Source: Chrysemys picta bellii (taxonomy: Eukaryota). Taken from it: a DNA stretch of 64,000 nucleotides. Below, one piece after another: positions 25,051 through 25,065 of the stretch. Both the position numbers and the translations under genes were made by a program. A model generated the notes under the pieces. The model saw only the letters and a list, made by a program, of their open reading frames with translations. It made no database searches and was not told the origin of the DNA. Each line of letters opens with the position of its first letter. Positions within the stretch are counted from its first letter, which is position 1. The stretch is from NCBI RefSeq assembly GCF_011386835.1, contig NC_088805.1, positions 28,892,001-28,956,000 on the forward strand, in the 5' to 3' direction.

Positions 25051-25065
25051 CTGTTTCTGAAGGAA
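25051..25065 (-). CDS. ATXN2: Candidate 15-nt in-frame microexon of ATXN2 (adds VPSET)
   Basis: ttttttttttctctttccatatctgttgtag|TTCCTTCAGAAACAG|gtaact; phase 1-1, no stop; sequence-only inference. Confidence 0.6.

Follow-up and report, generated by a model that had tools for sequence, protein, structure and literature searches.

Evidence for a conserved 15-nt cassette microexon in the ATXN2 gene of Chrysemys picta bellii

Introduction

ATXN2 is the gene of spinocerebellar ataxia type 2 (SCA2), as well as a risk gene and therapeutic target gene in ALS. Neural microexons are typically small, frame-preserving, and conserved together with their intronic flanks, and they tend to encode segments of surface linkers; the usual cis-element of SRRM4-dependent examples is a UGC motif shortly before the acceptor. 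The published ATXN2 splice variants arise from skipping of exons 10, 11, 12, 21, and 24 (PMC7650068, PMC12275423), and the variants have been grouped as types I–VI (PMC12275423). An exon encoding the pentapeptide VPSET is not mentioned in these two ATXN2 splicing papers, and our literature searches, which covered the large microexon catalogues only partly, returned no paper containing the junction peptide and nothing relevant on ATXN2 in combination with microexons or SRRM4.

The exon is nevertheless already known to databases, where VPSET occurs in NCBI-predicted ATXN2 isoforms from sharks to mammals. RefSeq models of this kind include Carcharodon carcharias X3, Amblyraja radiata X4, Anolis carolinensis X3–X5 and X7, Gekko japonicus X1, Cuculus canorus X8, Elephas maximus X9, and Microcebus murinus X11. 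Here we describe the corresponding exon in a 64,000-nt stretch of the C. picta bellii genome (contig NC_088805.1, positions 28,892,001–28,956,000 of the forward strand), which we call the window and to which all coordinates refer. We consider it very probable that the element is a genuine ATXN2 cassette microexon, conserved across jawed vertebrates.

Results

Gene context and flanking exons

ATXN2 is located on the minus strand of the window, with exon 1 at ~46.3 kb and 14 or more additional exons extending to ~2.1 kb. The microexon lies between two constitutive exons that we label exon 5 and exon 6, presumably in agreement with human numbering, and that are separated by an intron of 9741 nt. 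Exon 5 (32511..32661, minus strand; 151 nt) encodes the C-terminal half of the SM-ATX (LSm) domain (PF14438 profile positions 39–81 of 81) and its region matches cuckoo ATXN2 at 94% (tblastn). It ends in ..NYARR plus one carried base; the 3' end reads AGA G/gtatgt, which gives phase 1. Exon 6 (22645..22769, minus strand; 125 nt), placed by tblastn and by a contig match without differences, starts with (D)AFTDSAIGVKVNGEHKEKDLEPWD. Its 5' end reads tag/AT GCT TTT, where the first two bases complete the Asp codon and are followed by AFTDSAIGVKVNGEHKEKDLEPWD.

Several other features of the gene were observed in the window. Exon 1 (46180–46327, minus strand) opens with MSLKQQQQQQAAAQ, and the polyglutamine tract therefore comprises only six residues in this species. 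In intron 1, ~200 nt downstream of exon 1, a GC-rich 54-bp minisatellite (45144–45966; ~15 copies, 90% matches) yields long proline-rich pseudo-ORFs on both strands. Reverse-transcriptase-like ORF fragments (..FLIPKKNGGWRQILDLRSLNKYV..) at 16400–18000 (minus strand) suggest a decayed retroelement within an ATXN2 intron, and a run of N at ~12870–13200, also intronic, marks an assembly gap or a masked stretch.

Sequence and splice sites of the microexon

The microexon TTCCTTCAGAAACAG occupies 25051..25065 on the minus strand, is bounded by ...ctgttgtag upstream and gtaact downstream, and adds Val-Pro-Ser-Glu-Thr. Direct reading of the window sequence bears out what the earlier note had proposed, namely a 15-nt minus-strand microexon at these coordinates, in phase 1-1 and with the reading R-VPSET-D. 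Its inclusion translates as ..YARR-VPSET-DAFTDS.. without a stop codon in the frame of the flanking exons. The element thus falls within the size and frame range of microexons (≤30 nt, multiple of 3, stop-free).

Upstream of the exon, a polypyrimidine tract with a TCTCTT motif and a 34-nt pyrimidine-rich stretch ends in the TAG acceptor (25066..25102, minus strand; direct reading). It is preceded by a branch-point-like CTGAT (25103..25107, minus strand), whose A, the putative branch point, is 39 nt upstream of the acceptor with no AG between. The CTGAT columns are invariant in a four-way alignment of the window with emu, roadrunner, and lizard. On the other side, the donor GTAACT is followed by a run of 7 T (25039..25050, minus strand), which may act as a U-run enhancer; the donor reads GTAAC in the window and the birds and GTAAT in the lizard.

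Splice sites were scored with a rough position weight matrix. By this rough measure the microexon reached 3.3 bits for the acceptor and 8.6 bits for the donor, equal to or exceeding both constitutive neighbours (acceptor/donor −3.3/8.6 and −4.0/5.7 bits). In a scan of intron 5, no AG..GT pair of 3–30 nt other than TTCCTTCAGAAACAG was in frame, free of stops, and at its score thresholds, and block-shuffled introns contained a mean of 0.02 candidates of comparable score. Within the microexon, an internal CAG with an acceptor score of 2.5 makes a 6-nt exon possible at the sequence level. Such a 6-nt variant had been suggested before: the CAG is indeed present, but an insert consisting of ET only occurs in none of the ~200 ATXN2 proteins inspected.

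Transcript evidence

In a survey of sequencing runs, genome-like runs held 0.4–1.0 of the sampled words, while six runs held ~0.04. The latter share corresponds to the length of exon 6 relative to the query, which is what spliced RNA would give. Of these six runs, four were compared with window positions 22500–25400, and three of the four gave no contig on exon 6 or elsewhere in this interval. The fourth, run X23, gave one 233-nt contig (depth 4.1) that matches 22645..22771 on the minus strand without differences and carries a loose end of 99 nt, the plus strand of which starts GTTTCTGAAGGAACTCTCCTTGCATAATTG. Reverse-complemented, the loose end reads CAATTATGCAAGGAGAG followed by TTCCTTCAGAAAC, that is, the 17 bases at the 3' end of exon 5 and then the microexon. 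The alignment stops at 22771 rather than at the exon boundary because the final AG of the microexon equals the intronic ag at 22771–22770. The contig therefore consists of exon 5, microexon, and exon 6, and contains in one molecule both junctions that the earlier note had predicted, 32511>25065 and 25051>22769.

Hence, the canonical AG/GT sites of the microexon are used and joined to both neighbours in RNA, as seen in one contig from one run. The assignment of X23 as RNA is a guess, and its organism code (D) is not the one given to the genome runs (A), while the species label is shared; the fact that the contig itself is spliced argues for RNA. In this species we observed the inclusion form, in this one contig of run X23, and no skipped form. 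Alternative use of the microexon in C. picta bellii is suggested by the isoform models of its relatives.

One low-depth contig as the support in this species would also be compatible with a chance splice-like motif or splicing noise, in which case the exon would be cryptic, present at trace level, and without function. Assembled contigs, however, keep the dominant path, so that the inclusion form in X23 is not a trace variant. The conservation described below bears on the same alternative.

Conservation of the insert at the protein level

Protein searches were done exon by exon, with no joined query of exon 5, microexon, and exon 6. A word search with the exon 5 peptide matched only genomic ORFs running into the intron and was uninformative on splicing. 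An exhaustive search against representative sequences gave a full-length ray ATXN2 (P0033), the LSm–LsmAD region of which was used as the next query. It retrieved 120 ATXN2 proteins, 10 of which, all from cartilaginous fishes, contain exact VPSET between YARR and DAFTD. A second query, a 45-residue segment of the white-shark isoform that spans the insert, additionally matched Cuculus canorus, seven squamates (Tiliqua, Anolis, Phrynosoma, Sceloporus, Pogona, Gekko, and Sphaerodactylus), and six mammals (two Sorex, Microcebus, Loxodonta, Elephas, and Ictidomys). VPSET is thus found at the YARR/DAFTD junction in predicted isoforms of at least 9 chondrichthyan species, at least 7 squamates, C. canorus, and at least 6 mammals, a census that is a lower bound as it counts cluster representatives only. 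Among the matches, again cluster representatives, no turtle, crocodilian, amphibian, or teleost ATXN2 model carries VPSET.

Isoforms both with and without VPSET are modelled within one species in Carcharodon, Chiloscyllium, Mustelus, Cuculus, and Anolis. Examples are X7 without the insert versus X3/X5 with it in Carcharodon, and X5 versus X4 in Chiloscyllium punctatum. The coexistence of both forms is as expected of an alternative cassette exon. In birds, one among more than 100 models carries VPSET, which may mean that inclusion is rare or restricted there. Two mammals show variant inserts at the same junction, VVPSET in Erinaceus (P0204) and VVPSETGLSFA in Rhinolophus (P0206), which point to the use of other acceptors or donors in these species, or to errors in the models.

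The scarcity of the insert among bird models could likewise be taken as a sign of splicing noise. Against this stands a peptide that is invariant over roughly 450 million years, the divergence date for the VPSET-bearing lineages. In addition, the DNA shows no differences even at synonymous positions, and the exon flanks form a conservation island (see below). We therefore regard a chance motif or noise as extremely improbable and keep to the reading of a genuine, conserved cassette microexon.

Conservation at the DNA level

The DNA comparison was limited to three ATXN2 loci, those of Phrynosoma (L001), Dromaius (L002), and Geococcyx (L003). In all three, TTCCTTCAGAAACAG is present in the homologous intron with 15/15 identical bases and with its AG and GT, in line with the earlier expectation that the 15-mer and its splice sites are conserved in other reptiles. 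In the four-way alignment of window, emu, roadrunner, and lizard, invariant columns amount to 15/15 in the microexon, 26/40 in the 40 nt upstream, 41/60 in the 60 nt downstream, and 25/100 in the 100 nt further upstream.

The exon is embedded in an intronic conservation island (24898..25174, minus strand) with 81–83% identity to the birds over ~275 nt, which is the best-conserved block of the intron in this comparison. In the lizard, 97 nt at 25094..24998 are the sole alignable part of the 9741-nt intron. The flanking coding exons show 92–93% identity to the birds and 76–86% to the lizard. These values by themselves would place the source among sauropsids nearer to birds than to squamates, most probably turtles or crocodilians. 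A second block of intron 5 (27739–28020) has 75% identity to emu over 288 nt and 73% to roadrunner, and is not alignable to the lizard.

Candidate regulatory elements

The size of the exon, its frame preservation, its deep conservation, its conserved intronic flanks, and its position in a surface linker are typical of neural microexons of the SRRM4/nSR100 programme, which are included mainly in neurons. Assigning the exon to this programme accepts it as real and differs on regulation only. Yet the stretch from the branch-point-like site to the acceptor lacks a UGC, and no TGC occurs on the minus strand from 25130 to 25066, so that the UGC enhancer of SRRM4 exons is absent from this interval. 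The supplements of the MicroExonator mouse study contain no Atxn2 entry, a weak point since the files may use other identifiers. Taken together, SRRM4-driven neural inclusion seems unlikely.

Other motifs of the conservation island would fit an RBFOX/PTBP-type regulated exon of neurons and/or muscle, in which a downstream UGCAUG promotes inclusion and UCUCUU allows repression by PTBP. A UGCAUG (RBFOX-type motif) is located at 24924..24929 (minus strand), 122 nt past the donor; emu and roadrunner retain it, and the TCTCTT of the pyrimidine tract is invariant or nearly so in the four species. The lizard, however, has TGTGTG in place of UGCAUG, and the chance of one UGCAUG within 300 nt is ~0.1. 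Motifs of this type occur in the window at ~0.4 per kb per strand, which makes the copy at +122 a weak point, and UCUU is often found in pyrimidine tracts from composition alone. We consider RBFOX/PTBP control possible, but less likely than not.

Position in the protein

The VPSET insert is located 10 residues past the end of SM-ATX and ~58 residues before LsmAD, which agrees with the initial placement of the microexon between the LSm and LsmAD domains. The stretch that receives the insert is itself highly conserved in a 23-sequence alignment. An AlphaFold2 model of the LSm–LsmAD region with the insert, computed from this 23-sequence alignment, had a mean pLDDT of 36.5 and was unusable, and we make no structural claim from it. 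A PDB sequence search returned no solved structure covering the LSm–LsmAD insert region.

Discussion

On the reading that we favour, the spliceosome links the 151-nt exon, TTCCTTCAGAAACAG, and the 125-nt exon in this order, such that VPSET enters the short conserved linker after LSm (SM-ATX) and before LsmAD with the reading frame unchanged. Recognition of so short an exon probably depends on the strong acceptor, with its CTGAT branch point and 34-nt pyrimidine tract. The near-consensus donor would help, as may the conserved intronic blocks on both sides, including the U-run after the donor and the UGCAUG at +122. Inclusion is probably under the control of the tissue or the state of the cell.

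With the insert, the linker becomes five residues longer and gains a Ser/Thr pair whose sequence context, Arg at −3 (RRVPS) and Asp at +3 (SETD), is favourable to kinases. A phosphorylation switch at the new Ser is conceivable, although this is speculation from the sequence context. A regulated change in LSm/LsmAD positioning, or in the partners bound there, would be a plausible effect. As judged from comparative sequence data, the microexon is very likely functional, because sharks and mammals share its five residues, all four sauropsids compared share its 15 bases, and it lies beside the LSm domain.

A more far-reaching proposal is that the exon represents a regulated ATXN2 switch overlooked by the SCA2/ALS literature, in which a tissue-specific phosphorylatable insert (RRVPS/SETD) in the LSm–LsmAD linker would alter RNA or partner binding, or condensates. 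We consider this quite improbable. If it were true, the isoform ratio would bear on neurodegeneration linked to ATXN2 and on how oligonucleotides that lower ATXN2 are designed.

For annotation, the point is that the exon is real and belongs in the gene model of this genome. For the field, it poses a cheap and testable ATXN2 isoform question without a new kind of biology. The element is in all probability an alternative microexon of ancient origin in jawed vertebrates, present in gene models but undescribed in the ATXN2 literature that we searched, and not a new kind of element.

Compared with the published ATXN2 variants, the microexon shares frame-preserving and probably alternative splicing of the same gene. 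It differs in that those variants skip ordinary exons downstream of LsmAD, and none adds a microexon between exons 5 and 6. With the conserved microexons of vertebrates (3–27 nt) it has in common its length, a multiple of 3, a strong acceptor, conserved flanking introns, and insertion in a linker beside a folded domain; unlike those of the neuronal programme, it comes without an SRRM4-type UGC element upstream of the acceptor. The closest counterparts are the VPSET isoforms in NCBI/RefSeq, in which the gene, the YARR/DAFTD junction, and the five residues are all the same as here. Those isoforms are computed models from other species, whereas the exon described here is supported by the genome sequence and one transcript contig.
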